From assembly GCA_047495785.1 (NCBI GenBank), contig JBLDXI010000048.1, forward strand, positions 310,001 to 374,000: a DNA stretch of 64,000 nucleotides, in the 5' to 3' direction. The position numbers were made by a program, and so were the translations under genes. Below are positions 4,146 to 64,000 of this stretch, in pieces (positions within the stretch are counted from its first letter, which is position 1; each line of letters begins with the position of its first letter). A model generated the notes under the pieces. The model saw nothing but the letters and a program-made list of their open reading frames with translations, did no database searches and was not told the origin of the DNA. This DNA comes from Lepidodermella squamata (Eukaryota > Animalia > Gastrotricha).

Positions 4146-4162
4146 GTCAAGAAGACCTTGAC

Positions 4163-32818: not shown

Positions 32819-32831
32819 GAAATGATGGTAG

Positions 32832-38523: not shown

Positions 38524-39267
38524 TTATCCTTTCACAGGGTTATAAAGTCGAAAAACGTCATCCAGAAGTTTCGAGTCCAATTTTCGCCCACCGATAAATT
38601 TGTTAGCAACGTTCCGTATAGACAAGAGATCGATAATTTCAGAATCAGTCATCTGGGGCTGAGATTCATCCATGTTACAGTCGTATTTCGCCACCAAAGT
38701 GTAACCAGGAGACCATAACCGCTTCGTTGATTTATACATGATGATGCCGTTTTTCAACACACGAAAATCAAAAATCGACTTATCGTTACATTGTTTCACC
38801 GCAGCGTCTAAAACGTAGTAGCGCTGCTTCAGGCCAAATAAGACATCGGGGTAGAAAATGTGAACACCGTCTTTACGACTAGGCCCACTTGTATCGATTC
38901 GGTCCTTTTCGCAAACGTAAGCATTAACCAGTTCCCTTGGAATACCAAGTTGCCGAGTCATCACAAGATTAATGTTTACTATAGCTTCGATAGCGACAGC
39001 TCTCGACCTTTTCACATGCTTGCCTTTCAATTTAATGTCCAAATCTACGATAAGAGGACCGACGTCTCGAAAATGTTCATGCATGTGGAGATTCAACGAT
39101 GGGTCAGCGGCGAGTCTTTTGTAGATCTCCATGAATTGTTCTTCATCTTTGATATGATAGTCAATATCGCTATTTGCAAGCTCGTAGTCGTTGAAAACTG
39201 ATTGTATCGAAGTATGCGTCGGACTTTCGACACAATTGTGAGGTTTCAAAAATTTCACAAGTTCCAT
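38524..39267 (-). CDS. Archaeo-eukaryotic primase (AEP) domain resembling the N-terminus of NCLDV D5/C962R-type primase-helicases; 247 aa, no helicase part
   Basis: THTS, motif I LIVDLD, motif II KDGVHIFYP, motif III IFD followed by IMYKSTK. Intronless. Start reassigned to MELVKFL, 67 nt after the upstream stop. Confidence 0.72.
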   Translation of the reverse strand: MELVKFLKPHNCVESPTHTSIQSVFNDYELANSDIDYHIKDEEQFMEIYKRLAADPSLNLHMHEHFRDVGPLIVDLDIKLKGKHVKRSRAVAIEAIVNINLVMTRQLGIPRELVNAYVCEKDRIDTSGPSRKDGVHIFYPDVLFGLKQRYYVLDAAVKQCNDKSIFDFRVLKNGIIMYKSTKRLWSPGYTLVAKYDCNMDESQPQMTDSEIIDLLSIRNVANKFIGGRKLDSKLLDDVFRLYNPVKG

Positions 39268-39334
39268 GTAAAATTCTAATTTCAAAAACAAATATTTGAA
39301 ATTCGCTGTTTTTATTAATAATTTCAAAAAAGGT

Positions 39335-42176: not shown

Positions 42177-44682
42177 CTACCAAACTATGCATTTGTTAGG
42201 ACGGTTCATCGGAGACTTGCCACAACTAAAAACCCTTGCGAAGTCTTGATTGTTCGAAACAGGACCATTAACTCTGTCAATAATTAATTCTTCACCAATG
42301 ATCAAGCATAGATTAAGATGAAATCAAACCTGAACTTCATGGGTGAATGAACATCTTGCAATATTTGCTGTTTCATCGCTTCTGGGGTCGCAATGTTACA
42401 GAAAACCTGAGAATAAGCAATAAAGAAAAGTTGGTCTCCAGTTAAATCAAGCCCAGGCAATGTTTTCCTGCTATTCGGAAGGCTCTTGTAAGCCAGATAA
42501 GCCGCTCGAAGTCCGCCATTATCTCCAATATTCTCCCCTAATGTTTGCTTTCCATTCAGGAATACTCCATTATCAGAGTACGAAGAATATTGATCCACCA
42601 AGCATTGAGCCCTGTTTTGAAACTCCCGTTTAGTCTCATTCATCCACCAATTGTTCAAATTGCCGAGTTTATCGTAATTACCACCCAGGCTGTCGAAACC
42701 ATGCCCGATTTCGTGGCCTACAATGTAGCCAATCACAGCATAGTTCAAAGCTGGATGCAGTTCTTTATCTGTGTAGAAAAATGGTGGACTCAGGATTCCG
42801 GCTGGGAGTACGAATTTGTTCTTTGTGGGCTCGTAGTAAGCATCGACAGTCTGTGGATTCATTACCCATTCGTTTGGATCAGGTATCTTCCGAAGTTGCT
42901 ACAAAGCCAATAAAAGTAGTTTGCAGAAATCAGAAGACACCAATCCTTATTACCCTTAAATTCTCTTCAATTTTGAATCGTTTTGCATTGACTGAATTTT
43001 CAACATAATCTTCCGTAACTTTGAGTTTCTCGTAGTAACTATTCAAATGGGTTTCATTCCTCAACCACTGAGGATAGGCCGATTCGTAAAGGAAAGCGTC
43101 AGATTTGTCCAAAGCCAGAATTTTCGTAGTTTGGTCCATCCAGTTAGCACCAGCGATAAGCTTCCTAAACGCAACTCTCACATCTTTGATCAGATTCGTT
43201 ATCTGAAAATTCAGAAAAGCTCCACAAATTGTCCGATAAGGAGTCTCGGCATACCATGATTTTGCCTTCCTCTTGGAAGAAGTTTTCAACATACATAGCC
43301 CCCAAGCCGAATCCGACGGCTGAATCAGTTTCAGCTAAGCAAGATTTCCAAGTGGGAGTCGCTCCGGTTTTTCCGCTGAGAACAGTCTCGAATTTGCTGT
43401 ATGCCTCTCCGAACTCTCCTCCGAAATCGTTGGCATAAAACGCCAACGCTCGGAAAGTAACATAATTTTGAATTGTTCGTTTTCCCTCCGGTGTAACTTG
43501 GAATTCATCTATAAGTGTCGATAATTTCGTAAAATACTCCGTGCCGTAAATCAAAACAGGTTCCATATATTGACTGATATAAATTTCAGGCTGGTTGGCA
43601 AAAACGCTTCTCGTGAACTGAACCCAATCGAGAAACCCAAAATTAGCATTCGCCCATTGGAGACTTCGCCTATTGTACTCGACTTCGACATTGAAAATGC
43701 GACTAAGCGGCAGTTCAATGTCTGCGAGTTTTTGCTCGAATTTAACGACTTCGGACACTAGGTTTTGGTCGACATATTCTGCCCCAAGTATAAGAACGGC
43801 GTAGGTATTTAAGAGTTCAATGTAAGCTGTTAAGACAGGATCGCTCAACTCCTTGCCCACGTAGTAATCTCGTGTCCCTCGGCCTATGCCCAAGCTGTTT
43901 GGGTAAATCAAAATGATATTCGAAGACACGTTTTTGTCATCAGTCGCAACTTGGAAATCGAAAAACCCAGCGGTATTATAGCGATTTCTGGCCTCTAGTA
44001 ATCTGCCCAAACTCCAAGATGGATGAATTTCTCGACTTCGCAGTAAAAACAATCCTCCTAAATCGTCGACAAGCTGCCTTAGAAAAACCTGAGCGCTAGT
44101 TGTGTTAGATTTTGCTTGGATGCAAGACTGGTAGAACTTTTGGGCTTTCAGTCTTGCTGTTTGCTTGCTAAGCGGCTCTTGACCTTCCAATAAGCCCCGG
44201 AGATTCTTCTGAACCAGTTCCGAGGCCTCCTGTACCGTTCCATACTGATTATAGTCGTTAGGTATGCTATGTTTTTCTGTGGTGACAGAATCTCTGAAAA
44301 AAATCCGGATCCTAACTAGAAACTTACTTTCATAGCCACCGCATGCATATTGGTAGAAATCGGTGCAGGGCATGACTGTTAGGTCCATATTTGCGATGAT
44401 GGATCCAGCAACCGTGACGCAACTTCGGCTTTTGCAAATTTTGTCATCAGCTGTTTTAAGCCTTTTCTCTCGATCGAGATGAACCGCGAGAATTATGACC
44501 ACGATCGAGAGGCATGTGATCGCAGAAATTAGGCACGTGATTAGTCGGTGTGTTGAAAACCAATTCCTAATCCGTTCACATCTTTCAGAGTCTGCAGGGT
44601 TGGAATGAAATTTCGATGAATGAATTGAATCGGATTATATTTTACCCCGAATTTCGAACCAGGCATTTCGCAACTTTTCCAT
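42177..44682 (-). CDS. Neprilysin/ECE-family (M13) zinc metallopeptidase, multi-exon type II membrane protein
   Basis: N-terminal TM, PCTDFYQYACGG, VDAYY, HEIGH, GENIGD, HSP, C-terminal CIVW. Short introns explain the ORF breaks. Confidence 0.92.
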
Positions 44683-45593
44683 TGTTGGATGAAAGCTATA
44701 TACCTACTCCAAATTTTTGAATGTTTGGGATGCTCGGTGCTCGGTAGTTACTATACTGGTACTCAATGCTAAAATGTACATTGCCGGAAGTGGAGTGAAT
44801 GTCATTTTGCCGTAGAAAATGAGTGCGTTGCTTGATCAAGTTGTAGTAAACAACTTATCAATATCAATTTCAAAGTCAAAACAGTAAAAACTTGAGTTCC
44901 GGTGACTGCTCTGTGATCTCAACGTTTCTTTAACATAAACAAATACCCGCAGCCGAAATGTTTCTCTCACCGCAATTTTATTGTATAAAGTTTCTTGATT
45001 TCACCCATGGATAAGAAACATTTCTGATGGAAAAATGCGGACATTTTGCTTGTCTTTATTCTTGATTGCTTCATATTATGAAACATGAAACATTTTCACG
45101 ACCTAAAACTATAAGACTTATCTTGAAATATGAGTTAAAATATCATTAAAATCTCTGCTCTTGATCGCAAAAAGATATTTGCTATCGGAAGAAAGCGTAC
45201 ACGTGTTTCTTGTTCCAGACGGAAATCCTTTGATCAAGAGCTCAATATAACTCGCATGCAAATGTAATCGAATAAATGTCGATTTAAACGCCTTCCTTGA
45301 TGACTTGATGCCAATTTATAATGGATCTACGGGCATCGTATTATAGTTGAATTCGAGCGATCTATTCCTGTCTTCGTAGATGCGACTCCCGCTCAAAGTA
45401 CCGCGTCTAGGGTACCGTCTTATCCATGTCACGGAAAACGGAGAAAATGCAGAGATAATGGATGACCCCATTTCAAGTTTAAAACCTGCTTAAAATCGAC
45501 ATTATATTGGCTGCATTTGCTTCCGGCTTTCAACTGCCTGCCACGCTCAGTAAAGCATATGCGCTACTTCAGCGATTTCATTCGGTGTCAGCA

Positions 45594-47940
45594 ATGAAAG
45601 TTTTTCTTCTGCAGCTTATTTTACTGATTGTTCATGTTTTGCCAACTTTGGCTCTGAAAACGTACAACCTATCGCTGCTATCGCTGATTTCATTCACGGG
45701 AAATCCACCATCAACAGGGCTTGCATGTAAAATCGCCTGTGGCATTGCTATTAATACTGTTAACAATCAGTCAGACATTCTACCCGACTATCACATTGCA
45801 ATTCAATACGAAGATGAGGCCAGTGGAAATCTCGCAGCCATGGCTGCGCTTAGCTACAGCCGAAGTTACGAAAATCAGCGAAAACCTAACGCTTTACAAT
45901 CTCCTGTCATTGCCGGCCCGAATTCGTCAAATGGTTGCAAGGTGCTTGGCCCAATTTTACATGAAATCAACTCCGTAGGCCTGACAGGTCGTTGCTCGGC
46001 CTCTTTTCTAACTGATCAAAATATCTACCGGAATATGTATTCGATGCGAGCAACAGGTGGCATAATAACTTTTGCTCAAATGAGGTTCATCAAAGACGTT
46101 GGGCGTTGGCAGCGAATTGGCATTATCACAAATGTCGGAAGTGCAGCGGATTACACTTCAGCCACGATTCTACACCGCCTTGCCCACGACGAAGCCAATG
46201 TTTCTGTGCCATATTTCGACATTGTAGCTGAAATGGATGACGAGTACTTTGTGGCGATGAAGAAGAGTGACGTTAGAGTGTTTGTTGTTACTACGGCGAT
46301 CGGACGGCTAGTTTGGAGATTTTTCTGTCAAAGTCACAAATTCGGCATGACTGGGCCGAGATACGCCTTCATTCTTCTTGGGGTAGCTTTCACTGACCCC
46401 TCTATTCTTCCGGACCCTGTTGTGCCGCAATGCCGTCGAGCTGTGGTAATTGAGCAATTGAAGGTTACTTTTCTGTTTAAAAGCTTGAAAGTTAAAGTTT
46501 GTAAGATTTTCACAGCATGCCTTCTGGACAGCTCCGATTCAGTCCACGATGGAGCCGACAGCTAAAATCTCATTAGGATACAACTTGTTGGAATTTGACG
46601 CCATGTTCGATCGATATTCGAATAACACACGACCCGTCGACTACGAGCAACGAGTTTCCTGTCACGACAACATCCTTCAGGCTGCATTGACACTCCACGA
46701 GTCTGAGAAGGCTCTGAAACGGCAAAACCTTTCTCTGCGCAACATGCGAGACCAACCTGAACGCGTGATGCGAATCGTAAACAAAACAGCCATCTCAATC
46801 GATTACTTAGGGCTGAGAATGGGTAAGCTAAAGTATAACGATAGGGGAGAGATCGATGGGGACATTCTGATGGTCAGCCAGTGGACACCTTTATCAGGTT
46901 ATCAAATCTTGTACACAGTTCATCAGTATCCTAATACTTCAGCGTACTCTCTTTCGAGCTATTGGATGAAAAAATATCGCGATCCTTTATGGCAAACCCA
47001 GAATGATGAACCACCTAAAGATAGGGCTAATATGAGACAAGGAAGTCAGGAAATCCCAGAAGAGATTATCTACATCACTGGATCTATAAGCGTTATTGTT
47101 AGTCTTGCCCAGATTACGGGACTCTTCAAGATTCTTCAAAAGCCGAAGTTAGATAACGGGCCTCATAAGTTGAAGCTGATTGGATTGATGGGAGCTTTAC
47201 TTATGAATTCTGCTTCGATCATGTTCTCGCTACAAACGTCCATAGCGCCCCTAGTTCTATGGAAACTACGCCTAGTCTTATCAGTCATAAGTTTTGGTGT
47301 CTTGAATGGGATACTAAGCCTGCGACCAATCATCCTATCTTCAGCTTGTAGTCGCGAATCTGAACGAGGGATGTCACTTCGGATTATGAATCTTGAGGCT
47401 AATTTCGCTGAGAGTGGAAGATTCCGCTTAAGTACTAAGAAAAAAGACTCTATTGTTAAGACAGAGATGAAAGAAAACGATGATTTGAGCTTTGCCTGGG
47501 TGTTGATTTTCACGCTAGCAAACGCAGCTCTCGTTGGATTCTGGTTACTCGGCGATCCTTTGGTGTGTTTCAGTGCGGCAAATGATCCACAATACGTTAA
47601 TGAAGATGATTCAGTAATTGAAACTTTCTACTGGGTATGCGAATCAGGTGCAAATCATTCTAAATGGCTTGTAACGCTTCTAGGACTCAATGCTGCTATT
47701 TTATTTGTTGGATGCATCTCGACTTTGAAATTGAAATTCAATGGTAGGGTCTCTATCCCCGAGATAAAGCCTATGTCTCTTGGCCTGGCTAATTTTGCAT
47801 TGATTTTTGTTGGTTCGATTCTTGTCGCTGCTGCGGTTGATGAGATAGTTGCACAGGAGATCACTATAGCTTTTGCTCTTTTGATAATTTCGGCTACAAC
47901 CTCTGCAACTTGGCTCTACCCGCACGTGATCAAAACCTGA
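45594..47940 (+). CDS. Divergent class C (GABA-B-like) GPCR; 2 exons (45594-46463, 46516-47940)
   Basis: Signal peptide, ANF/Venus-flytrap features (VNNQSDILPDY, IAGP, WQRIGII, FGMTGPRYAFIL), PPKD linker, several TM helices with WLLGDPL...C. Confidence 0.75.
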
Positions 47941-48057: not shown

Positions 48058-49926
48058 TCAATCGATAAGCTCATACAAGAACAGCATAGCATTTTCATCA
48101 GTCTGGAAAACAAAAGGCATCAAGTTTGGGGCTTTTATAACGAAATCAATGAAACTAACCAAATAATCCTCTGCCAAATTGACCTGATCATCGTTGAACA
48201 TCAGCCATTTGTTCATGCCTTCATTCCATGCATAGGCGTAAAAATGGCCACAAGTTACCTGGCCTCGGTGGCAAATCACTCCAATCAATCGATAGCATGG
48301 CTTCTTCTTCGGCCGATTCTCCTCAGGGCAATCCTTGTGCATGTACCTGGAAACGTCGAGTTCTGCCGGGTAGGAATAGAAGTCCCAGCCAACTTTGGAT
48401 AAAACACCCCTTACATCCCGCTTGCAACGAAGGAGGTAGAGAGTTAGGTACTTGGGCAACGACCAAATGTATTTTTGCGATGACATATAATGTCTGGTCG
48501 GATATTTTGCTCCAACACTGTTTTGGACTATATTCGACCTGCCAAAGTACTGGCCTAGCTGTTTGACAATGCTCCGACCAGAGAACGAATAGTAGCTACT
48601 GTCCACATCTAAGATGATTGTGCTGAACGGTTCGACGCTGCTTTCACTGCCACTTTCGGTAACCATGTGGCCGTAGAATAGATCGATAATCATTGATTGG
48701 TTACGTTCACCATACAACTCAGTCTGTTCTGGAACATAAAACTGCACCATGTAAAGATTTCACTTTCAGGCGAGATAATAGATATTCAAAGGAAACCCGA
48801 AAATAGCTGTGAAATCTGTGCCTGAGCTTGAAACTGAGTGCTGATATCCCCCAATTACGAGAAGCACCAACTACTTGACCTACTTAATAAATATCGTAGC
48901 TGATTAGCTCACTTGTGCACATCCGCCGAAGATCAGTTTCGTCGATAACTCGGTAAGCTTCCGCATCTCCCACATTCAATTCGGCATGAAGCTGTCGAAG
49001 TATGATCGTCATGACATCGAGCAAATCGTGATGCTCATTCGTCGAAAATCTGTTGTCGATTCGTGCCAGTTGTCGCTTCACCAGCAACGAATCAGTCGCC
49101 TTTTCATGAGACCATAGAGTCGCAATGGTCATAGCGATCGAGTTGAAAAGCGGACCACGCTTCTGAGGCCATTCTTCCAGGCAGATGCGTTTGAAACCCT
49201 CCGCGTGGCTTAGACATTGCAACAAGCTATTAAGATAGCACTGGGAGCAAAACTTCGATAATCAAGAACTAGCTGATTCTTACGTTGTTGTCAACGTTCC
49301 TAAGGCCAGTTGCACCCAGAGGAGTGACTTCTTCCGGCGGCGTCACTTCTTCAGCAGGCTGCTGAGTTTTCTTTTGGCCTCGGCGCTTTGCAACCGCCTT
49401 TGTAGCTAAAGGTGCATTCTGATTGTTGGTAAGTACTTGGCTTGATGCGGCTGGCAAACTTTTACCAGTCGGTTTGGTAGAAGGGCGCTTCACGACAACT
49501 CTGGTCTCGTATTCGTCGCAATCCATTCCAACCGGCTCAGGTCGGGAAAGAACTTGGGGCTGAGGGACTGAGACCTGCTTATTCGAGCCCTCCAGCTCAA
49601 TCATAAAAGTTTCGACTGTAACAATTGAATAGCAATTATCAATCTGCAAACGATGGAAACAACTACCTGCTTGCTTTGAATGGCTGCCAAGGATTGAACC
49701 ACATTTCTTGCAGAAGAAACTGCCAGGCAAGTACTTTTGGCAATTGCAAGTCGTACATTTACCATACAAGCCTGTTTTTTGGACAAAAAATTGATTTTCA
49801 GGATTCAATCAGTAAATCCTCACCCCCAGTATGATAGTACTTCTGGCAAAAGCAGAAAAGACACGAATCGTAATCAGAGTAAGATCCAAGCTCGAATTTG
49901 TCACATCGGCTTATGTAAACCGTCAT
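48058..49926 (-). CDS. USP-family (C19) protease A with a Cys-rich N-terminus, multi-exon
   Basis: Spliced Cys box GLRNVDNN|CYLNSLLQ, His box VICHRGQVTCGHFYAY, WLMFND. First exon 49926-49824 is MTVYISRCDKF...CLFCFCQKYYH. Splicing between 48742 and 48912 is uncertain. Confidence 0.8.
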
Positions 49927-50009
49927 TCCTATGTAAACCCTATATGAGAATTCAAAGTTTTATTCAAAAACTCGTAACATGAATGTCCTTTATTTTGAGA
50001 ATCAGGTCT

Positions 50010-52852
50010 TTAGGGGCGTTGCGCAGGAACTTTGTTGTCAGAGCGAGATAGGAAGTACCACAGCATAACACCGCAGCCGATAGTCGTAACAAAACCAACA
50101 GCTATCAACGTACCAATTTTAGCCTTTTTTGAGAATCGTCGCTTCTTCTGAGCGTCTCCGTCAAGTAACGGAGCGTCAATCGCGCAATCTTCATTCGCAA
50201 CGGCAGTTTCGTTGGCTTCACCTTCGATAGAGCCGTAGCTCAGAGGGCGATAATCAGAAAAAGAAGGTGGCTCACTTGGCGAGGGTAGAACAGGCTGTTC
50301 AACAGTGATGGGTTCGTCAAACTTGGCGGGAGGCTCAATGCCAGGCTGGTCGAGATTAGCGGTGAGTTCTGGCAATTCAACTGTCTGCTGATCAACCTTT
50401 CGATAGACAAACAGGCATGCGTTAGAGTTGCTCGAGAAGTGGTTGCTACTCGGCAGCTTTTCGATGCTGGTATCGTTGAAGACGAACCAATCTTCGCCAC
50501 GCTTCGAGTAGGTGAAGTAATGGCCATGCTCGAGTGAGCCGGAGTGATTGATAACGGAAATGAGCTCGTAAGCAGCAAGATTCGCGGAGCAATCGGGAAT
50601 CTCAAGCCTGGAAGAATAAATTGGAAATTAATCAGATTCGAAATCAATTAACCTACCTTTTCGGATATGAGACGTGGCTATCGATTTTCGACCTGCGCCC
50701 AGTCATCGGATCCTCTTCAATCCTAGCCAGTTGGACGATAAGATACGGCGGGCACGTCTCAATGCAACGTTTCTCCAGGTTGAAAGCGTTTTCATAGCAG
50801 AATGGGCAAGGGTCATCCTTGAAATTTCGAACCTTCTCAGCAAAATGTTGGTCGAGCATGTCGTTCAACGTGAGTGACCGCTGGCGATCTTCGTCATTGA
50901 ACGCGAGAATCAAAATGTTGAAGCACTGAAACGCCGAATATGCTGGAATGACTTTGTGGCATTTAGGGCATTTAGCTATCGCGTTCTCTTGAAATCGAAA
51001 GAGGCGAGCGATCTCAGACATGTAGCAACTCGAATCGTACTGCCAATTTTCTGTTTTTCGAAGAATTCACACATTCAAGTTACATAATCAAATAAATCCA
51101 GGTTACTTTGGGCAACTTCGCGGCAAGATTCCTGGCCAACAGCTTGGATGATTTGAAAAGGAGGCTGCTCAGCAACTTCGCTGCACTCGGCGTGCAGTTT
51201 TTGAAGAACACACGTCACAAAATTCATCGCATCATCTTGCCGACCGATGTGAAACGGCCGGACTCGAGACGAAACTGCGGTTCGAATGTCTGTCGGATCG
51301 TGGTAAGATCCCGGCGTTTCATAGGCCAACTTCATGAACTTGGCAAACGTTCGAGTTGTCGGTTGGGAAGAAGGATGACTTGTGAAGTATCGATACAACT
51401 CTTCAATCGGCAGGATTGCCTGAAGAGCGCTGTTGACGTAGCACTGCAAAAAGAAAAAAGAAACTAAAGAAACAGAAAAAGAATAGATCTTACGGTATTG
51501 CCAACGTTTTGAAGCCGGATAGCTGGCTTGATCGCCATGCCTCGGAATTGAAACTCTGCAAACCTTTGCTTGAACCTTTCCTCAGCTTCCTGATTGGACG
51601 CAGCCGGCAGCTTCGCCTTGGCAGGCGGTTCGTCATCGCTCGATCGCTGGTTCGCCTTGCGACGCGTTGCCTTCTCGTTCCTCGACGAAGACTTGCTCCT
51701 GCTATCATCAGCCCACTCGACATCAGCAGGATCGTGCGGCGGCGCGGACGCTTGGTTCTTCCTGCCCTTGCGATGGTGCTTGTGGCTCTTCTGGTCAGGA
51801 CTCGCGAGGTTTTCGATATCCATCTGCGATTTGTCCAAGTGCGGCTTCTTGTTAACAGGGCTTGGCAACTCAGCTGGCGGTTGTTCGGAGTTATCTTTCG
51901 GTTGGAATGCGGACTTCGCGGATTTCTTGCTATGAAGAGAAGAGGGAGTACCAGTTTGCTTGCTAGCTTCATTCTTCGGCTCTGAATCTTGAACAGCTTT
52001 GGGCGGATGGTGGTAAATCGATTGTGACAACTGGCCAAATCGGGGCTGGTTTTTAATCTCAGCGGGCAAAGCAGAAGGTTCTGAAGGTTCATGGCCAGCC
52101 TCCTGCGGGGATTCCTTAACTGCAGAATCTTGCGAACTAACAGTTTCCGATTTCTCTTGTTTCATCGGAACAGTAGCGTCTGGAACCTTTTCGACTTCCA
52201 AATTCAGCTCACTGGTGATAATTGCCGATTCGTGAATAGGCGCTTCGACGTTCTCCCGATCAGCCGAGACTTGATCAGCAGTTTGGATCGGATCCTCTGA
52301 TTGTTGTTCCATCGGTTCGACTTGGCCGGCAGATGATTCTTTGATCTCAGCATCGACAACAAAACAAGGTTCCAGTGACGATTTCTCATCTTTCGGGGCG
52401 GAAATAACTGCTGAAATTTCGGCCGAGTCAATGGTTTCTTGAAGAGTAGGTATTGCTTCAAGATCCAGTTGTTCGGTTTGGCGAGGAGCCGAGTCATCGG
52501 ATTTGCTCTCGCCACCTGCTGCTGTAGGGAGATCGGCTTCAGTAACTGAAGATGGCTGCAAAGACGGTACCGCGTCAGATTCGTGATTGGCAGGTTTCTC
52601 TTCAACCATCATTCGTTCAACTTCGCAAGGAGCTGAGTCTTCGGGTTTCCTCTCAACAGATGGCTCAGAACCAGTAACCAAAGATAGTTGATTCGGCATT
52701 TCTCCATCTTTCGCCTTGGACAAGACATTCGAAGTTTCGGGCAAGTTCTGAGCCGGTTTTTCTTCAATCGGAGCCGATTGTAGCTTGGAATCAGGCGCTG
52801 TCTCAGCAACGGCCTTGTTCTTATTCTTGCCCTTGTTCTTGCCTTTTCCCAT
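50010..52852 (-). CDS. USP-family (C19) protease B with a long disordered N-terminus and a C-terminal transmembrane anchor, multi-exon
   Basis: Spliced Cys box LQNVGNT|CYVNSALQ, RQDD, CPKC/CPFC, His box VINHSGSLEHGHYFTY, WFVFND, then IGTLIAVGFVTTIGCGVMLWYFL close to the C-terminus. Confidence 0.87.
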
Positions 52853-52953
52853 TTTGGTGGGTAAAAATTATTTTAACAGTATCTAAAATAAGCGAACGAA
52901 TTCGAAGTAGCTTGGATAATAACGTTATTTATCAAGAGTTCAAAGTTCGAAGT

Positions 52954-53814
52954 TTAGCTCCGCGGGCGTTGGCTGGTTTGACGGGCGATTTCACGGCATC
53001 GAGATTCGTACTCAGCGGGATTTTTCAGGAGCAAGTCAGCAGCTTCGCCATTGAGGGCGCTGTCCGGGTTCGGGTTCAGCAAAAGTGAAGCTAGACATTC
53101 CAAAATAGCGGCGACATCCATTTTAGGATCCCAATGTTCTGGCTTCAGGTGACTAACGCAAATGCCACCGATTGAATTAACTGTCATGGTAAATTTATTT
53201 ATTTTAGAAATAATCATGCCATATTAAGTACAGAAAATCAATAAATTTAATAGGGAAAAAATTCGTAAAATTGAAGAATGTTACAAGAAGTTGAAAGAGT
53301 TAAAATCCCATAGAAACAGAAACTTAGAAATAATTTAGAAAGAATAGAATTTTTAAAATTCAAGATAATTCCAAAATATCTGAAAAATCAATAATTTCCG
53401 CAGCTTTTGAAATTAAAAATATAAATAAAATTCGAAATCTATGCAAAATTCATTTATCAAATTCTAGGAAATTTTTAAAAAATTCTAGAAAGTTGTTGAG
53501 GATATTTACTGTTAGGGTGGAACATGGTGTCGAGAAATTTGACGATTGGCGGCAAAGCAGGGTAGTTTTGCGGGAAATCCAGTTGAACTCGAAAAATGCC
53601 CATGGCATAGGGCGATTTAGCCGGGCCGAAGATAAAGCCGCGCCATCGGAATAGGTTATCATCGACCGGCGACGCGGTTCCGCATGAGTGCGGATGAGTA
53701 AGCACCCTGCAATTGAAACAATTTGATATAATATTTGAAATTTAAATTATAAATTAATAAATACTTGTTCAAATCGTTTTGTAGGCGAAGAGCGCCGGTT
53801 AAATTACAAGCCAT
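52954..53814 (-). CDS. Divergent E2 ubiquitin/UBL-conjugating enzyme; 3 exons
   Basis: RLQNDL, DNLFRW, GPAKSPY, FPQNYP..PP, FHPN|INSIGGICVSHL (catalytic Cys), WDP, PNPDSALN. Confidence 0.92.
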
Positions 53815-54184
53815 TGCGGATAATGTTCTAAGAAGAGGCGAAAATTGAATGAAAACCTGTTGTGAAAAAATCAAAAATGAAAGAAGGCGCGTGCTTGAAG
53901 AACTGTTTGCTTGCCAACTGGCGCCAGAATGAAGTCACGCGATTGTCAACATATGATTCATCTCATTCTTTTTGGCAACAGATTTGAAGTGAAAAATTCG
54001 AGAAAATCACATTTATATGGCACGACATGGGTCAAACAATATCGCGTAAGGAAAAACAATGAGTTAGAAATCGCATGAACACCTCCAATAACCAACAAAT
54101 GGGAAATCGAAGACGAAAATTATAGGAGTGTAAGCCATTTTCATCAAGGAATATAAATTAGCCGTAATTCAGAAATTAATGATA

Positions 54185-54553
54185 TACAGCGTGTCCCATA
54201 AATAAGGCAAGCAAAGAAAATACCCGGAAAAGGTTTCAGAAACTCTAAACTGAGCCTTTCAGAAACTTTTTATAAAAGTTTAAAAAAATCACGAGAAACG
54301 TAAATTTAAGTATATCACTTGCGTAATGCGATAAAAAATTTCCGGATAAATTTGGTCCAACAGGGTAAAATACCGAAAATTACCGAACAAGTTACCATTC
54401 GGGGTTTTCCGGGTTTTCTTCGGTGAGTTTTTTTATTTCTTCGATTAAATCGCAGATAAAATTTGGGATATTCTCTCGGTAGGTTTGATTTATAAAATTA
54501 GTTGAATTCCCTACACAACATTATTAGTTGCGCAACTTCTGGGGCACGCTATG
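54185..54553. mobile_element. Possible degenerate mariner-type MITE between the UBL and E2 genes
   Basis: Imperfect inverted termini tacagcgtgtccca ... tggggcacgctatg. Confidence 0.35.
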
Positions 54554-54931
54554 TGAAGATTTCCGATTTTTTGCAATTTCATGAGATTTTTAGAATTTTA
54601 CAGGATTTTCGGAAAATCTTGCTTAAAATTTAAGACGCGCAATGGCATTCTGAGTTTTCAGTTTTATCGACCCTTGGAGGTCCAACTTCGAAAAATAATT
54701 ATTAACAGATGCGGCGCATCATCAGTCTTAAAAAAAATAAGAAAATTTTTCTCGGATATTTGACTCACAGCAAATTCACAGCAAATGTTTGGTACAGATT
54801 TTATTATCGAAATAATTCGAATTCGAAAAATGGTACCACTGATTAAATCATGAATTTCAAGTTGATTAATTTTTTTACAAAAAATGCGGTCAATTTAAGT
54901 TAGTAGCGACGAAAACGCGCGCTGAATTCGT

Positions 54932-55192
54932 TCAAGCGTGACGGCTGCCGCCTTGAATGCGCGGAACAACGTGGATGGTGTGGCGCGGTTGGATGCCGAT
55001 CTGAGCCAGCGTCTGATTCTCATCGAGTTGATTACTGCCGTGCAAAATGTTGACGTTGTTCGTAACTTGAGCGCCAGCCACTGATTCGAGCATGCGAACA
55101 ACCTCACGCACCGTGTCCTTGGGCGATACGTTCACCTTGTACAGCTCACTGTGGCCGAATACATTGAAGGTGATGTCGAAGCGGTCGGACAT
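54932..55192 (-). CDS. Divergent ubiquitin-like modifier precursor (86 aa; di-Gly plus 4-aa extension)
   Basis: Beta-grasp signature VSPKDTVREV, QLDENQTLAQIGIQ..TIHVVPRIQGG followed by SRHA. The sequence does not match ubiquitin, NEDD8 or SUMO as I recall them. Confidence 0.9.
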   Translation of the reverse strand: MSDRFDITFNVFGHSELYKVNVSPKDTVREVVRMLESVAGAQVTNNVNILHGSNQLDENQTLAQIGIQPRHTIHVVPRIQGGSRHA

Positions 55193-56012
55193 GATATGTT
55201 TTTCAATTAAATAATTGATCTATCAACAGTTTTACGTGGAATATTTTTATTTTGAAGCTTCATCCGATTATTTATATGTAAAAATTTAGGTTAGACTTTC
55301 ATCTTACATATTCTTTGAAACTTGGCCAATGTGTCGCACGTGTTTGGCACGGCCCTGTGAAAAATGAGTCATAACTTAGCGCACGCGCTTCTCATTTCTT
55401 TCTATTATGATTCATACTCGAAAAAAATTGGCAATCAACAGCGAAAAAATTGAATTATTTCAATTTAATTTTTGATCGAGTTAATGGCACCGCTAAAAGC
55501 CGGGTTCCATAGGCGCCAAATGTTTCTGATTCTTTGAATTTTCGGCATAGTTTAGCGATGAAAATTTTCAATTCATGTCGTTTAGCCTCGATAGCGGGCT
55601 TGGAAAATCTTATGAAAATATCTAAAAATTAATTTCTCAATATTTTCTCTGATGACATGACATTTTTCTCAAAATTACATGGTGCGAAATCTGAGTTCTG
55701 AGGTAAATTCGGGACTTTCGGGAAAAAGCTCCTTGTAACAAATGTTCGTTAAATTTGCGAATACCTGAGATTCCATAATTTCTTTAAATTTACCGAATTC
55801 GGTAATTTTCCCATTTTATTTTCGGGATTTTATTCCTCTCATTGACAGGTGATCTTTTTTTATGACCTTTCTGAGCCCCGAGACCTCATTCAATCTCATT
55901 CTCTGTGATTTATTTCCTCCTTCTTTTTCTCCTTTATTCAATGAAATTTTTAGACATTTTTAGATTGATTTACGAAAAATCAAGATTTCTTGTCTAATTA
56001 ATCGCGACGGCT
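55193..56012. promoter_or_regulatory. Putative bidirectional promoter shared by the UBL and E1 genes
   Basis: 820 bp separate the divergent start codons. TATA-like element on the minus strand near 55270, CCAAT 55326, CACGTG 55337, TGAGTCA 55365, TGATTCA 55408. Confidence 0.45.
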
Positions 56013-59000
56013 ATGACTATGAATAACGACATCGACGAGTCTTTGTATTCACGACAGCTGTACACCCTCGGCGAGTCAACGATGCGTAAAATGGCAGGCG
56101 CCGATGTTCTCATCAGCGGACTCAATGGCTTGGGCGCCGAAATCGGCAAGAACGTCATTTTAGGCGGCGTTCGCTCCGTCACGCTTCACGACACAAAAAC
56201 TACGCAAATTTCGGACCTTGGAACCCAGGTAAATTTCTCATAAATTTTATTTCAAAATTTTATTTAAATTATTTATTTTATTCAAGTTCTATCTGACCGC
56301 TAATGACCTGAACAAAAATCGAGCTGAAGCGAGCAGGCATCGATTTGCTGAGCTGAATCCTCACGTTCGCGTCGAAGCAACCGACGAGAGCCTTGCCGTG
56401 GATTACGTCTCAAAATTCCACGTATGCAATATTTAAAGATTTATTAAATTTATCAAAATTTAGTGTTGTTCAGGTTGTCGTTCTCTGCGATCACGTAATT
56501 GACGATAAAACGAAGGAGATGGGCAAATGGTGCCACCTAAACGGGGTCAAGTTCATTCTAGCTTCAACTCGCGGTTTATTCGGCCAGCTCTTCTGCGATT
56601 TCGGTGAAAAATTTGAAGTGATTGATCCAACTGCTGGCGAGCCATTGTCGCGTCTTGTCGACTCAATCAACCGTAGCAGCGACCCGTCATCGCCTCATTT
56701 GGTCAAGCTGGTCGAGCAAACGGGTTCGAGAGGTTTTGTTCCGGGCAATCTGGTGACATTCGCCCTAGATCGATCGGTTCCTGGGGCGGAAGGGGATCGC
56801 CGAACTTGGGGACCTTTTCGCATCTCTGCTACGATAACCGCTGATATTTTCTCTATTGAAGCCGATTGCGAGATGCCACCAAGCAATAAATGCATCGTAA
56901 CCCAGGTAACTTGGTAAGTTAGATGGTCGGTCCTGTATGAAATCTCTATTTGCAGATCAAACCCAGCAAATCAATGTCATTCAAGCCTCTAGCTGAAGCC
57001 GTAGCCGAACCTAAATTCCTGATCACCGATTTCGGAAAAATGGGCCGGGAATCTACGATCCACCGCGCCTTCTGCCTGCTCGGCGAATCTGGTGACTCGC
57101 CAACCGCTGGAAACGAAGAATTTGCCCGGAGATTCTCCGAACGTTTCGAAGAAGAAGGCGACAAGCAAATCGCAAAGGCCTTCGCTCTTCAAGCTACCGG
57201 TAACTTGTGCCCGATGAACGCTGTTATCGGAGGATTCGCGGCTCAAGAAATCTTCAAAGCTGTATCAGGGAAATTCGTCCCGCTACATCAATTCATGTAC
57301 TTTGACGCCTTGGAATGCCTGGCCGAGGACCAAGAACCCTTCGAATTGCCATCGACTCCGAGTCGCTACGACAGCCAAATCGCAATTTTCGGCCAGAAAT
57401 TTCAGGAGAAGCTCGAAAAGTTGAAATTATTCGTAGTTGGCACCGGTGCGATCGGCTGCGAATTGCTCAAAAACTTCGCGATGATGGGCGTGGCCTGCTC
57501 GAAAGATGGCCACCTCCTTACAACCGACATGGACGTCATCGAAAGATCGAACCTGAACCGCCAATTCCTGTTCCGGCAAAACGATGTGAAAGAGCCTAAA
57601 TCGAAGGTTGCCGCTGCTGCGGTCAAGGCAATGAACCCTGATTTGAATATCGAGTATCATTTGAGCAAAGTTGGGCCTGAGACCGAAGATATCTACGACG
57701 AAGATTTCTACGACGATTTGGATGCAGTTGTCAACGCGTTGGATAACCGCCAGGCTAGGGAATACTTGGACAAGCGTTGCATCTACCATTTGAAGCCAAT
57801 GTTCGAATCAGCGACAAAGGGCGTAATCGGCTCCACAAAGGTTTCTTTTTCAATTCATCATAATTTGGAACTTCGGAACTTTGAAGGGTTCCAGCCCTGA
57901 ACTTTCACCTCAATTTGAACCTCGAATTAAGTTCTGGAACCTTTTTCTCTAGGTAATTCTGCCATCTTTGACTGAACCTTACTCGGCTGGCTTAACGGCT
58001 TCGGACGAACCTTCCTACGCCCTGTGTACGATCAAAAGCTTCCCAAACGCCATCGAGCATACGCTTCACTGGGCACGTGAACAATTCCACGATTTGTTCG
58101 TCTCGCCAGCCCAATACGCCAAACGATACGCGACAGAGGGCGAGCAATTTCTTGCCAATCTCCAGCCTATTGAACGATTGAAAGCCGTCGAGAGCTTGGC
58201 GCAGTTTCTGGTCTTGGAAAATCGACCTTCTAACTTCGAACAATGCGTCACATGGGCTTGCTCGAAATGGCAAGAGTTCTTTCATTCGGAAATTGCTGAG
58301 TTGACCGAAAAGTTCCCCCGGGATCAAGTTGGGTCCGATGGGCAGCCGTTTTGGAACAATGCCAAAAGATTCCCGCGAGCTTTGAACTTTGATCTGGGCA
58401 ATGTTAGTTTGTTTCTCTAGTTCTGAAGTTTATTGAACCTTTTCCTACAGGAGCTTCATGTCGATTTCGTTAGTTCAGCAGCCAATCTTTACGCAAGCTT
58501 GTTCGGTATCGCCCAGGTTCGGGACAAGTCAAAAGTTCGAGAAATCGCTTCAAAGGTTGAGCTGAACTTCAAACCTCGTGAAAAGCCGTTGATTGCCGAG
58601 AATGACCGTGAATTGCAAGTTCTGATACAAGAGCGAGCTGAGCAAATGGAGGCGAAGGTCACGGAGTTACTCGCGAAGCTTCGAGACCAGACTAAGATCG
58701 GTGGCAATTCGATTACGCCGATCGAGTTCGAAAAGGATGATGATTCGAATTTTCATCTCGACTTCATTGTCGCGGCTTCAAACTGCCGGGCTGAGAACTA
58801 CTTCATCGAACCTGCCAATCGGCAGAAGAGTAAACTTATCGCTGGAAAGGTTCCTTCGATCTTTTTTGTCGTTCATTGTTGATTGAAGTTGTTACAGATC
58901 ACGCCAGCTATTGCGACTACAACAGCGATTGTAGCTGGTCTAGTTTGCTTGGAACTTGTCAAATTCGTTCAGGGCCATTCGCAGTTATCCAAGTTCAAAA

Positions 59001-59407
59001 ACGCAGCTATCGACCTGTGCCAACCTGCTGTGATTATGAGCCAGCCTCGTGCTGCCAAGCTGGAACCACCCTATGCTCCCAACGCCCCAAGTTGGACAGT
59101 TTGGTCCCGGTTCAGCTTCGAAAACCCTCAAGTTACATTGGGCGAAATTCTGGAGACACTCCTCAATCAAGATGGGGTTGTAGTTGGCATGGTTGCGGTT
59201 GGTAACGACGTTATCTATAACCAGGTGTTGATGTCTGCTGAGAAGAGGCAGCAGCGGCTCAATTGCACAGTACGGCAGTTGATCGAGAAGTTTTATCCGA
59301 AGATTTCCGCTGCGGTGAGCAACAAGAAATCAATCCGCCTCGACATGGCTTGTGTCGGCGATGATGGCTCGATGCTGGCCATGCCATTCGTTCGCTGCGT
59401 TTTGTGA
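56013..59407 (+). CDS. Divergent monomeric UBA1/UBA6/UBA7-type E1 activating enzyme; 7 exons, about 1008 aa
   Basis: Exons 56013-56228, 56287-56421, 56474-56905, 56956-57840, 57953-58402, 58451-58849 and 58898-59407 all join in phase 0. Motifs [41 protein letters not shown], catalytic [24 protein letters not shown] and a C-terminal UFD. Confidence 0.95.
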
Positions 59408-60979
59408 TTAGAAATTAAAAGAGACGACGTGATCAGCTATAAATAAAGAATTTATTTGAATAATTTTAACAGTTTTGTGCTAGTTTTGTGTTTTGTGTGA
59501 TCGGCCAGCGGCCAGTTGACGAGTTATACTTCAGCTATTTCAGGGCCGTTATCGATTTCACAAATCACTGATTTTTCCCATATATCGGACGCCAACTTCG
59601 AAAATGCTTGAAAACATAAAAGCATTGGGTCCTGGGGACATTATCATTCTTGGGGCTTATTGTTATACCACTATTAGTCGCTGAGTTCCAGGTTAGTATA
59701 TCAGCCGAGAAACAGAAAAAGCCCAAATCGCAAAGAATCGAAAACTTTTATTGCCGATACCTTCGAATGTAGTGCTGAGAATGCTGAACTTCAATTCTTT
59801 TGTGTACATATTTTGTACTTTTGGTGCGTCTCATTTTCTGTGAAGCAAAAGATCAATATTGTATGAAATGAGGACTTGGCCAACTAACGAATTGCGACCA
59901 TATTTAGTGAGTTAAATAAATTGAGACCGAGAGTTTCAATAATCTCTGGCTTATTTGCATTCCGGCAGGTATCACTGGTCTCAACTTTGGTACCCGGCTG
60001 ATTAGAAAACTTGAGAAAGACCTTCGAAGCATTCCTAAATTCTTGAATATTTGTAAAAAAAAATTCTAAAATTCAAGCACTGTTTTTTCAGAAAGTTCAA
60101 TATCAATATTTAAATTAGTGTCAGAGTTCAGATAAAATCAATTTCAGCGTAAATTAGGGGAAAAATAATACGTATGTAACAAAAAAAACGAAAGTTTAGG
60201 AATTCAAACCCTTTATGATAGCTCAGGGATATCTTCGCTAAGGTATGGCGTTTCAATGAAGAGTCAGAATTACCCAGCCCCATAGACATAATTTAGGATA
60301 GACTGCTCACTCACGAGAAAAAGGGTGCTACGCCATGGGCGCCAGATGATGGTCAGCTGATTCATCAGCGCTTGGAGGAAAAGTAAACAACAATTTTCGA
60401 TTGTTTTTTACTGGTTCCGTGATGGTTTCGATTTTCCCAAGGGTTTCGTTGGTGGATCCAGACATAGGAAATCACGAGGAACACGCTGATTATTTTTTCG
60501 AAATTTTTAAAGGAATTTTAACAGGTTTTATAGTCATTTTCACCTGAACTTTGGGTGGATGCCCTGCAAAAACCAATCATCCGATTGGGCAGTTTTCCTT
60601 CGATTACATTGATTATTAATAGTCATGCCTAATTTCGTACCGTAACGTCGGTTTTTCTTGGCAAAATAGACGTGTCATTTTGGTATTAGATCGGGAAAAA
60701 AACTAGACGATGAAATCACTTCATCCTCGTTTCATCCGCAGTCGTTTCTGCGCTAAAAAGAGCTGAGATTGACGTTTCTTCGCGCGTGCATTTATTTCGC
60801 GATTTTCTCTCCTTGCAAAAAAGTGGTACACGCGTCCCCTTAGAAGCAGCTTCCTAGGGGCAGATCGCACCCTGTGCCACGCAACACTCATTGATTTATG
60901 TATCAACGCGTTGACCTTTCCGCACGTTCCAAATTCACACCAGGCTTTAATTCACATTTTTTCGTTTCAATATAAAATA

Positions 60980-63900
60980 ATGATTCGCTTGTTGTCTTTT
61001 CTTGCGTTGATCAACTTGGCGGCGTGTTCGCAGTGGATCCGCTGCTTCTCGCAGTTCGATAACACGTTTGTTCGATGCCGCAAGACCAGCAAAGGTTGCC
61101 ATCAATTACGCGAATTTCAGGTAAATTCCCAACATTACTCGTTCAATTTTTCTTAATTTTGGGCGAAACCTGCCGAAGGTTTAAAATCGTCTCAAAAATC
61201 TTTTTAAATATCAGAAAAGTGGGACATGATTTTCCGACAAATATTTTAAATTTTTTGAAATTTTTACCTGATTTTTGACAAATTTAATTGTTTACGCTGA
61301 TTTTTTACGCCGCATATTTGTTTTTTTTCCCACAATAAAACCTTCCCTCTGTAGAGTCGATTCGCAAATAAGTAATCGATAATTTTGTCGATTATTCCGA
61401 TCGATAATTTGGCCAACAACTAGGTATTGTGTTGTCCCAAAACGATATTCAGAAGGCTGGAATTTTTTTAAGGGAAAATTGATAATTGCCGATGAATGCT
61501 GATGAGACAGATGAAAAAAAACTAAATTTTCCAATATTTGTATTCCCGCCTAAAAGAGCTATTTTGTCCAAAATTATCTCGCGTTATGCGATAACTTGAA
61601 TGTTTTGTTTCTACCAACACGGCATAGGACGGTGCGCCGTTTCCGAACGTAACATCTTGCAGCCAAGGGGTTAAGTTTTTTTTCAACAATTCTTATTTAT
61701 TTCCAATATAACGTCATTTCCGCCGTTAATAGTACGCTCGGATGTGCTACAAATATGCCGCGTTGACGCCGGTGTGCAAGCCAGGCTGGCACAGCTGCAA
61801 AACCGGCGAGATCGTACGTTCTAAATTCGCATATCAATTCTTAGATCGCTTCATATCAATTTTTCACACAGGAAGTTGCGGAGGTTCGAGGATCTGACTT
61901 TCTTGGCGAAAACCTGCGCGCCTGCCGCGATGCGATTGAAACGTCTTTTCAGGTAAGTTGTTCACATTTTCTGAACATATATTCACTTCTAGCTGTTTGC
62001 AGAATCAATTTTTCACACCTTGCCGCAATGCTCAAGGCCAACTGGTGGCTTGCGTACCAGCCCTGGACCCCCTAAAGTTCGGCAAGCTGTGCCCGGCTAA
62101 TACGGTAAAAAAAGGACGAATTTTCAATATAAAATTGGAGCAAAGGATTTGAGGAATAGAGTCTACAAAAGTAGTGAAAAGGGATTAGAAAGAGATTTGC
62201 TTTTGCTTTTTCAGGTTATGCGACATTTCAGCAACGACATTTAAGCAGCGAAAAATTCGACTTTTTATCAATCGATTTTTTCGCAATTTTTTTCTGCCGC
62301 ACTGGCTTCTTCAAAAATATATTAAAAATCTGAAAATATTAAACGCCCTTAAGTTGCTTTATCCTTGGCTTTATCTATTAGCGATATAAAATGTGCAAGG
62401 TCCAGTTCAATAATTAATTTTTCGAAATAATTTTTATAGATCGCCGGCGCTTACTACGAGGATTTTGCGAAGTGTGTCGACGGCCAGAGTAAGATTTAAT
62501 TCATAAAATTGAATCTCATTTTGGGTTAAAAAAGCTGCATTATTCAAATAGTTAAAGTTCCGGTCGATGAGAAGCCGCACATTCGATGCTTTGATTCTTC
62601 GACTCGGAAATTCACCGATTGCCGGCCGGTCAGTTCGGGGTGTTTTGCCGCTAACGAAACGGGCCAATACTCGCCATACTCGTTCATCAACAAAAATACG
62701 TGCCTGAAATGGGTAAGTCACCGCTGGGAAAAAATCTGCATTATTTCTAGAATTCGAAGCTTGATCGTGTTCGAAATGCGGGCGAACTCCCGAATACAAG
62801 CAACATTATCCATGATTTATTTTAGATTAAAAAGGGCAAAATTAACAAAAAAGTGTCGATCTCAAAATGATGTAGAAAATCAACAAAATAATCGATTTTC
62901 AGAAACAGTTCAGCCACTGTTGTTTTGGGCTTCTCTATAAGTGTAATTTTCATTTGTCGAAGTCTAGGGTAAATAAGAAATAAGGAAAAAAACATTTGCA
63001 CGGCGTTAAATCATTGCTCTTTTTACTAACACTTGTTTTCACGCCTGTTTGTGCACACCCCTTATGGTTTTCGAATTTCTGGTCTTCACTAGAATCTAAA
63101 AAATTGTTTATCATGCCCAATCGATGGACCTTCATATTACGCTCATTTCGCACTATGAGCGGTCAGTTTACGAATTATACTTCATCCTATGGAGCCGATA
63201 TCGATTCCAAGTATCGATTTTACAAATCAGTGATTTTCCCGATATCAGCCGTCTTGGAACCCAACATTGATTATTTTTCTACGTAGCACCATGTAGCTAG
63301 AATAAAAAGCCTAGGATCAGGGAAGGCATCAGTATCGATCAAAAACCGAAAACGCCGAAATCTTAAGGAATCTTAAACATTTAGTGCTGGAACCTCATTT
63401 TTAGCGGTGGAAATATGTGGACCCGATAATCTCTGAGAATAGTCTATACACCTATTTGTTAACGTATTTCAGAGTGCTGTGAAATGTCTAAGAGCTGGTG
63501 AAAAGTTTTGCTACAGCCATTGCCCGCGCGACTCGCTTCGTGTAAGTTTCCTGCAATTATACCGAAATCGCAGTAACCTTTATCTATTTCTTTCAGCTGA
63601 AAGTGTTCTCGAACTCAAAGGCGTTTGCCATTAATTACAACAACTGCGTTACCGATGTGCCCGTTCCGGTAATTGCTTTGCTCTTTATATTCATCCTTAA
63701 TTATCACTAAGTATCTATCAAGAAAGGGCACCTAAATATAAAGATTGAACCTTTCTGTATCCTGTATCATAGCTGAGCTGCATGAATGGTGGTATTTACG
63801 TTTCGCTGACTGAGTCCTGTAAGTGCCCGAAAGGCACATCGGGCACGCTTTGCCAACTAGGTATTTTAGCCTTACTGATTGCGAATCAGACATTGCAGTT

Positions 63901-64000
63901 TGCTATCCCATAGGAACGCCTCTCATCGTTTGCGCAAACGGTGGTGTGCTGTACAACGAGACGTCTTGTAGCTGCCCGGTCGGGTGGATAGGCAACAACT
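60980..64000 (+). CDS. Secreted Cys-rich / EGF-repeat protein with many small exons, truncated by the window end (may be more than one gene)
   Basis: Signal peptide MIRLLSFLALINLAACS, Cys-rich micro-exons, EGF-like CMNGG...CKCPKGTSGTLC and CANGG...CSCPVGWIG near the end. Confidence 0.6.

Follow-up and report, generated by a model that had tools for sequence, protein, structure and literature searches.

The stretch of DNA analysed here (the window) comprises 64,000 nucleotides (nt) of contig JBLDXI010000048.1 from the gastrotrich Lepidodermella squamata, positions 310,001 to 374,000. Positions 48058–59407 of the window hold five consecutive genes for parts of a protein conjugation system, recognized from a listing of open reading frames (ORFs) and from Pfam searches on exon-sized ORFs: two ubiquitin-specific proteases (USP-A and USP-B), a conjugating enzyme (E2), the precursor of a ubiquitin-like protein (UBL) and an activating enzyme (E1). 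Gene models were obtained by reading junctions in three frames and enumerating frame-preserving GT-AG introns. Sizes below are in amino acids (aa), nt or base pairs (bp).

48058–49926, minus strand: USP-A, peptidase family C19, 529 aa; exons 49926–49824, 49771–49284, 49240–48913 and 48728–48058
50010–52852, minus strand: USP-B, ~895 aa; exons 52852–51494, 51443–51107 (or 51084), 51050 (or 51039)–50657 and 50607–50010
52954–53814, minus strand: E2, 157 aa; exons 53814–53765, 53706–53510 and 53180–52954; introns of 58 and 329 nt
54932–55192, minus strand: UBL precursor, 86 aa, intronless
55193–56012, no strand: spacer of 820 bp separating the UBL and E1 genes, which are transcribed away from each other
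56013–59407, plus strand: E1, UBA1-type, 1008 aa; seven exons (56013–56228, 56287–56421, 56474–56905, 56956–57840, 57953–58402, 58451–58849 and 58898–59407) and six introns of 48–112 nt

An earlier note on the same DNA had described five such genes with nothing unrelated between them, introns in four and intact catalytic residues, and each of these statements is borne out. Pfam matches and gene models place the five genes at the positions listed, and the gaps between them hold only a repeat (54100–54500) and the UBL/E1 spacer. Short GT-AG introns interrupt every gene except that of the UBL, and removal of both E2 introns as well as introns 3–6 of E1 was seen in RNA. All five reading frames are open and their catalytic motifs complete, comprising the ATP motif GTGAIGCE at 423 and catalytic Cys581 of E1, the HPN motif at 80–82 and catalytic Cys90 of E2, the boxes of both USPs and the GG-SRHA end of the UBL.

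A divergent UBL, E2 and pair of USPs

The UBL precursor matches the Pfam family ubiquitin with 34 bits, and Rad60-SLD was also matched. Its C-terminus reads PRIQGG, with the diglycine at Gly81-Gly82, and continues with the residues SRHA. Ubiquitin is likewise its best match in the PDB (~26 bits), the HMMER alignment placing the GG in register with G75-G76. An AF2 (AlphaFold2) model with a pLDDT of 82 shows a beta-grasp fold in beta-beta-alpha-beta-beta order, for which the top Foldseek matches were ubiquitin at a TM of ~0.8 and ~23% identity. Overall, the UBL is ~23–27% identical to ubiquitin, a protein that is itself near-invariant in eukaryotes. According to the HMMER alignment, Ile44, His68, Val70 and Arg72 are kept, while Arg42 is replaced by Val, Arg74 by Gln, Lys48 by Ser and Lys63 by Pro; the protein has two lysines in all, K19 and K25. 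A word-index protein search returned no relatives, not even the UBL itself, and an exact-product look-up was blank. No relatives were found in metagenome and viral contigs either, and the ESM Atlas offered only generic small ubiquitin-family clusters.

The E2 has the UBC fold, both of its large exons matching Pfam UQ_con (68 and 53 bits). The top PDB matches of its exons are Rad6/UBE2A and UBC4/UBE2D, at 60 and 44 bits, together with UBE2S; no UBE2L chain appears among the top 60 PDB matches, and UBE2Z is also not among the best. Counted by hand from HMMER alignments, identity to Rad6/UBC4 amounts to ~54% in exon 2 and ~40% in exon 3. Orthologs of Rad6/UBE2A and UBC4/UBE2D are far more conserved among animals, and since the identity observed is well below that expected for orthologs, the E2 is lineage-specific. 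It retains the Phe and Pro by which canonical E2s bind RING or HECT ligases.

Both proteases carry the catalytic boxes of USPs. Exons of USP-A match Pfam UCH at E-values of 5e-22 and 2e-06 and contain the Cys box NVDNNCYLNS, the His box GHF and the Asp/Asn box FNDD; exon 1 and the 184-nt intron 3 of this model are predictions from splice enumeration. The Cys-rich N-terminus, with the pattern C-x2-C ... C-x2-C (49824–49926 and 49650–49771), is possibly a zinc ribbon, judged by this spacing; no Pfam family matched it significantly, the best being Zn_ribbon_RRN7 at E 0.75. PDB matches of USP-A are weak and unspecific (Ubp8, USP28, USP15 and USP18). In USP-B, for which one junction has two equally plausible positions, Pfam UCH is matched on three exons and covered to the end of the profile; the catalytic domain is complete, with the boxes NVGNTCYVNS (Cys), GHY (His) and FNDT (Asp/Asn). 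It follows ~440 aa of low complexity, and at the C-terminus a basic stretch precedes a hydrophobic helix of 23 residues (KD19 maximum 2.05 at 861–879), with 12 further residues behind it, a predicted tail-anchor transmembrane arrangement. Exon 2 of USP-B has no PDB match at E below 1e-5. As far as these comparisons go, neither protease matches a specific USP family, and at 25% identity to each other they are therefore not recent duplicates.

A UBA1-type E1 with an altered crossover loop

The E1 has the six-domain architecture of UBA1, with Pfam matches to ThiF, E1_4HB, a further ThiF, UBA_E1_SCCH, in which Cys581 lies, and E1_UFD. Its exon 4 scores higher in the PDB against UBA1 (322 bits) than against UBA7 (253 bits) or UBA6 (236 bits). 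Of 101 near-invariant columns it keeps 99, two differences being the median of the set, and the enzyme should therefore be active. Over its full length it is 41–46% identical to animal UBA1-type proteins, compared with 44–52% among the representatives themselves. The best matches are scattered across UBA1-type enzymes of a red alga, a crayfish, a mite, a whipworm, a fish and a microsporidian. No close relative was found among 1.84 billion representatives; neither this search nor a 5.8-billion word search with exon 4 gave anything above ~61% local identity. Exon 5 had no match among metagenome contigs, and no UBL, E2 or USP was found near two environmental E1 matches (P0153 and P0003).

The earlier note had left the place of the E1 among its relatives to phylogenetic trees. 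These nest it as a UBA1-type animal enzyme, inside the metazoan UBA1 clade (SH-like support 96 and SH-aLRT 99) and not with UBA6. Its nearest relatives are less settled: a quick tree puts it beside a crayfish protein annotated as UBA1 and this pair beside the vertebrate UBA7 clade, with an SH-aLRT of 89 each, in a data set without canonical vertebrate UBA1. The grouping of E1, crayfish protein and UBA7 may reflect long-branch attraction, and as the tree contains no canonical vertebrate UBA1, we do not claim orthology of the E1 to UBA7.

The sequence changes that set the E1 apart are concentrated in a single segment:

57805–58027, plus strand: crossover loop of the E1 up to Cys581, residues 545–581, split by a 112-nt intron (57841–57952)

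In the stretch from ESGT to the catalytic Cys, 8 of 21 conserved columns deviate, compared with 26 of 239 in the rest of the protein (Fisher p=0.002). The residues introduced by G547A, K552I and Q556K occur in none of 107 representatives, and a three-residue insertion, GLT at 569–571, is unique in the set. Both canonical loop motifs, ESGTxGxKG and DPP[ED][KR], are missing. Canonical UBA1s of a mite, Trichuris, a myxozoan, a red alga and an amoeboflagellate keep both motifs; the UBA7s, the crayfish E1-like protein and the cluster E1 have neither. The crossover loop contacts Arg42, Arg72 and Arg74 of ubiquitin, Arg72 serving as specificity filter (review, PMC12355090). At these three positions the UBL of the cluster carries Val, Arg and Gln. 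The loop segment is thus a remodelled, putatively UBL-tail-binding part of the E1, and the E1 as a whole is a UBA1 derivative in which the part that would read the UBL tail has been altered.

Expression and a second copy of the E1, E2 and UBL segments

Reads of one DNA run (X1) and two RNA runs (X2 and X3) were compared over 52900–58899. X2 and X3 behave as transcriptomes, with depth falling to zero in introns and intergenic DNA. In contigs from both RNA runs, the two predicted E2 introns are precisely skipped. E1 introns 3, 4 and 5 are skipped in RNA contigs as well, and intron 6 is confirmed by a loose contig end at 58849 that runs on into the first bases of exon 7. Poly(A) tails mark the ends of E2 at ~52912 and of the UBL at ~54775. 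The E1, E2 and UBL genes are transcribed and spliced as modelled; the earlier note had allowed that the genes might be silent, which the spliced RNA of E1 and E2 and the poly(A) tails on E2 and UBL answer for these three. X2 contains 63% of the sampled words of 49500–59400, more than the exons of E1, E2 and UBL can supply, and USP-B and USP-A are therefore probably transcribed too.

A second variant of the UBL, E2 and E1 segments (52950–58400) is present in all three runs at ~87–90% nucleotide identity, in the DNA of X1 at similar depth and also in RNA. It may represent a homeologous locus, a diverged haplotype or a segmental duplication. Between the UBL copies, 15 codons differ with a change of amino acid and 9 silently, and one whole codon is inserted. 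With these differences, and with the frame of the second copy open, the tag is evolving fast and not decaying.

The same samples (X1, X2 and X3) contain at least two further E1-type transcripts or genes, recovered from contig loose ends at 57451–57503 and 58719–58790. They are only 60–70% identical to the cluster E1 at the nucleotide level, even in the most conserved motifs, and encode peptides such as LKLFLVGSGA, HMDFVVAASN and SNLHMDFIVS. One of these transcripts reaches a depth of 51 in X3, where the cluster E1 reaches at most 12, and one forms a 2397-nt RNA contig deeper than the cluster E1. They probably represent the canonical UBA1 and a UBA6-like gene. With such transcripts in the same samples, the cluster E1 is therefore probably not the only UBA1-type enzyme of the animal.

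Arrangement of the cluster

The UBL and E1 genes stand head to head, and the spacer between them (55193–56012), in which RNA depth in X2 and X3 is zero at 55300–55899, is a candidate shared bidirectional promoter. Words of 8–10 nt common to four upstream regions of cluster genes were not found. On the minus strand the genes are tightly packed: the E2 poly(A) site lies 60 nt upstream of the USP-B ATG (52852–52912), and 84 nt separate the stop codon of USP-B from the ATG of USP-A downstream (49926–50010). This operon-like spacing makes a polycistronic or trans-spliced E2/USP-B/USP-A RNA possible. AATAAA-like signals and TTTTAG/ATATAG motifs lie between these genes.

The sequence at 54100–54500, between E2 and UBL, is a high-copy repeat. 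Its summed contig depth in the DNA of X1 is ~10,000–35,000, versus ~60 for flanking single-copy sequence; it appears as many variant contigs with internal joints and is weakly present in RNA run X2. A repeat search around the UBL returned nothing meaningful.

A proposed dedicated conjugation cascade

We consider, with moderate confidence, that the cluster encodes a dedicated, lineage-restricted UBL conjugation cascade, analogous to that of ISG15 and UBA7 and with a UBL and an E2 that are not orthologous to those of that system. Judged by sequence, the UBL, the E2 and both USPs are not orthologs of conserved housekeeping families. The earlier note had proposed a self-contained, lineage-specific pathway whose E1, E2 and UBL all depart from near-invariant sequences. 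The pathway itself fits the intact, adjacent genes and the non-orthologous UBL, E2 and USPs; its E1 turns out to be a UBA1 derivative, remodelled locally. Departure from near-invariant sequence likewise holds for the UBL and the E2 and not for the E1 broadly (2 of 101 columns), where it is confined to the crossover loop.

In such a cascade, one of the neighbouring USPs would trim the 86-aa precursor after Gly82, removing SRHA. The E1 would adenylate the exposed Gly-Gly end and take over the UBL as a thioester on Cys581, its loop being suited both to a tail of PRIQGG and to a UBL body without Arg42 and Arg74. From the E1, the UBL would be handed to Cys90 of the neighbouring E2, which would pass it to lysines of target proteins via ligases (E3s) encoded elsewhere; a handover with unlinked RING or HECT E3s is suggested because the ligase-binding Phe and Pro are kept. 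Having only two lysines, and none at 48 or 63, the UBL would therefore probably serve mainly as a mono-modifier, presumably conjugated to substrates until removed by USP-A, as the soluble protease, and USP-B, as the membrane tail-anchored one. Insulation from ubiquitin would reside in the E1 crossover loop together with the UBL tail. The most economical origin is a duplication of UBA1, of an E2 and of USPs, gathered around a novel tag with the ubiquitin fold.

We put forward more tentatively a stronger form of this proposal, in which a hitherto unknown UBL has its own E1, E2, two deconjugases and two expressed copies in a co-regulated cluster, with the E1 perhaps from an older, UBA7-like branch of invertebrate enzymes that pair with neighbouring novel UBLs, as a crayfish E1-like gene next to a RING-UBL gene (see below) hints. 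A defence role is only an analogy, and the fast evolution of the tag would fit a defence role and a reproductive one equally.

Several points weigh against a dedicated cascade. We infer every biochemical step, the pairing of E1 with UBL, their co-regulation and the biological role from sequence. Transcription of USP-A and USP-B is no more than probable, on the word count given above. The presumed canonical UBA1 of this genome has been read off 30-nt contig loose ends and not from a gene, evidence that is indirect but consistent. Compared with the divergence of animal UBA1s among themselves, that of the E1 from them is larger by only ~5–7 percentage points, and the terminal branch of the E1 is not extreme in the trees. 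With Ile44, His68, Val70 and Arg72 kept in the UBL, canonical ubiquitin machinery might handle it, and the E1 might activate ubiquitin. Finally, no E3 lies within the cluster, as the earlier note had observed, and Pfam analysis of 59400–64000, the 4.6 kb past the E1, found no E3 and no other domain-bearing ORF.

Some of these points are shared by a specialized or dual-specificity ubiquitin pathway, which we judge unlikely, though it deserves more weight than the other alternatives below. Here, the E1 and E2 would be tissue- or stage-specific paralogs that still activate ubiquitin, and perhaps the UBL too, and the genes would lie together on account of shared expression, for example in the germline, and not of a private modifier. 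An E1 that keeps almost all invariant residues and sits in the animal UBA1 clade, a UBL with Arg72 and the Ile44/His68/Val70 patch, and an E2 nearest to the ubiquitin E2s Rad6 and UBC4 are all compatible with dual specificity, for which UBA6, acting with ubiquitin and FAT10, provides a precedent. However, the most altered part of the E1 is the crossover loop, by which the tail of ubiquitin is read, a GG-terminated UBL precursor lies head to head with the E1, and the same cluster contains two USPs of no known subfamily.

Improbable in our view is a chance assembly of housekeeping neighbours, in which the E1 would be the sole UBA1 of a fast-evolving animal, the E2 and USPs ordinary enzymes and the UBL an unrelated ubiquitin-fold gene. 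The overall identity of the E1 to animal UBA1s is indeed not far under that among the representatives, and other genes in the window also have only distant database relatives (an M13 peptidase, for instance, is only 27–28% identical to its best database matches, which are vertebrate); the lineage is therefore either poorly sampled or fast-evolving. Yet canonical UBA1s of very divergent eukaryotes keep the loop motifs missing here, the samples contain at least two further E1 transcripts, one of them more abundant, and the E2 stands well apart from all conserved E2 families. In addition, five pathway genes in a row are unlikely by chance: assuming that 1–3% of genes encode an E1, E2, USP or GG-terminated UBL, our rough estimate, which was not computed, is ~1e-4 to 1e-2 per genome.

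A decaying duplicated segment, transcribed and no longer a working pathway, is very improbable: the codon differences between the UBL copies, with a ratio of non-synonymous to synonymous change (dN/dS) of roughly ~0.5, could be taken in its favour, but five frames are open with catalytic motifs intact, the single UBL indel is a whole codon, the invariant columns of the E1 are almost all kept and transcripts are spliced and polyadenylated. An origin of the cluster from giant viruses or by other horizontal transfer is ruled out by the nesting of the E1 in animal UBA1s and by confirmed spliceosomal introns.

Comparison with known systems

The closest analogue of the proposed cascade is the ISG15 system (ISG15, UBA7/UBE1L, UBE2L6, USP18 and HERC5). 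Each has an E1 paralog derived from UBA1 whose crossover-loop motifs are altered, an E2 and a USP-family deconjugase of its own, and a GG-terminated UBL precursor with a short C-terminal extension. The likeness, which the earlier note had raised as a possibility, does not extend to the UBL, the E2 or the gene arrangement: ISG15 consists of two ubiquitin-like domains in tandem with the tail LRLRGG, whereas the UBL here is a single domain with the tail PRIQGG; the E2 resembles Rad6/UBC4 and not UBE2L6; and the ISG15 genes are dispersed, whereas those of the cluster are adjacent.

With the ubiquitin pathway of UBA1 and Rad6/UBC4, the cluster shares domain architectures, catalytic motifs and an E1 within the animal UBA1 clade, and its UBL shares with ubiquitin the Ile44/His68/Val70 patch, Arg72 and the terminal GG. 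It differs by the low identity of the UBL and the loss of Arg42, Arg74, Lys48 and Lys63, by the remodelled E1 loop with its insertion and by an E2 that is only ~40–54% identical to the nearest families. The FAT10 system (UBA6 and UBE2Z, or USE1) likewise employs a second UBA1-type E1 for a non-ubiquitin modifier in animals. In contrast to that system, the cluster E1 scores better with UBA1 than with UBA6 (322 versus 236 bits), the modifier has one domain where FAT10 has two, and no UBE2Z-type E2 is present.

In prokaryotes, Bil/Bub and related operons bring E1, E2, UBL and peptidase together in physical clusters. The cluster resembles them in grouping an activating enzyme, a conjugating enzyme, a UBL and a deconjugating peptidase; however, Bil/Bub systems have a short bacterial E1, a non-USP peptidase and no introns, while the genes described here encode a six-domain E1 and USPs and contain spliceosomal introns confirmed in RNA. 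Searches of viral and metagenome contigs returned no relatives, and we found no description of such a cluster in the full-text literature, which is not proof of novelty.

A lead for comparison within invertebrates comes from the crayfish Procambarus clarkii, whose protein annotated as UBA1 is the nearest tree neighbour of the E1 (CM082296.1; L001:10001-19345). On the same strand, 5 kb upstream of this gene, lies a gene for a 201-aa protein with a RING finger and a ubiquitin domain that ends in KYVGG plus a tail (L001:3093-5021). The crayfish UBL is 22% identical to that of the cluster, and the two resemble each other no more closely than each resembles ubiquitin. The pairing may be a coincidence, or a recurring association of UBA1-derived E1s with neighbouring novel UBLs in invertebrates. 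If the cluster is truly linked to the crayfish E1-like/RING-UBL pair and to UBA7, ISG15-type systems may have deeper roots in invertebrates than assumed.

To our knowledge, new conjugatable UBLs in animals are rare, and each known animal UBL (ISG15, FAT10, UFM1 and NEDD8) opened a field. With all parts lying within 11 kb, the cluster therefore offers a complete parts list for reconstitution. It would also serve as a natural test of how co-evolution of E1 crossover loop and UBL tail insulates a pathway from ubiquitin. It is unusual for the genes of an entire eukaryotic conjugation cascade to form a functional cluster, which makes the locus a case study for the origin of clusters and operon-like arrangements in animal genomes.

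Surroundings in the window

On the side away from the E1, a class C G-protein-coupled receptor (GPCR) gene directly flanks USP-A. Rfam and tRNA scans found nothing in the window. Other content of the window, comprising an ORF for an IIGP-like GTPase, the arrestin-domain genes, the primase and RNA-ligase ORFs, the M13 peptidase and the GPCR, occupies the following spans:

1464–2348: other window content
29362–33974: other window content
38524–41572: other window content
43165–44502: other window content
45507–47940: other window content

None of the retroelements, arrestin-domain genes, IIGP-like GTPase or primase/RNA-ligase pair in the window is obviously connected to the cluster. Two identical 399-aa ORFs in inverted orientation at 2946–5362 have weak RVT_1 and GIY-YIG matches, which suggests a pair of Penelope-like retroelements, and a further reverse transcriptase ORF lies at 20132–21718. 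The window also contains three tandem arrestin-domain genes, and an ORF for an AEP_C962R-type primase adjoins a 745-aa ORF for an RNA ligase/kinase/phosphatase.

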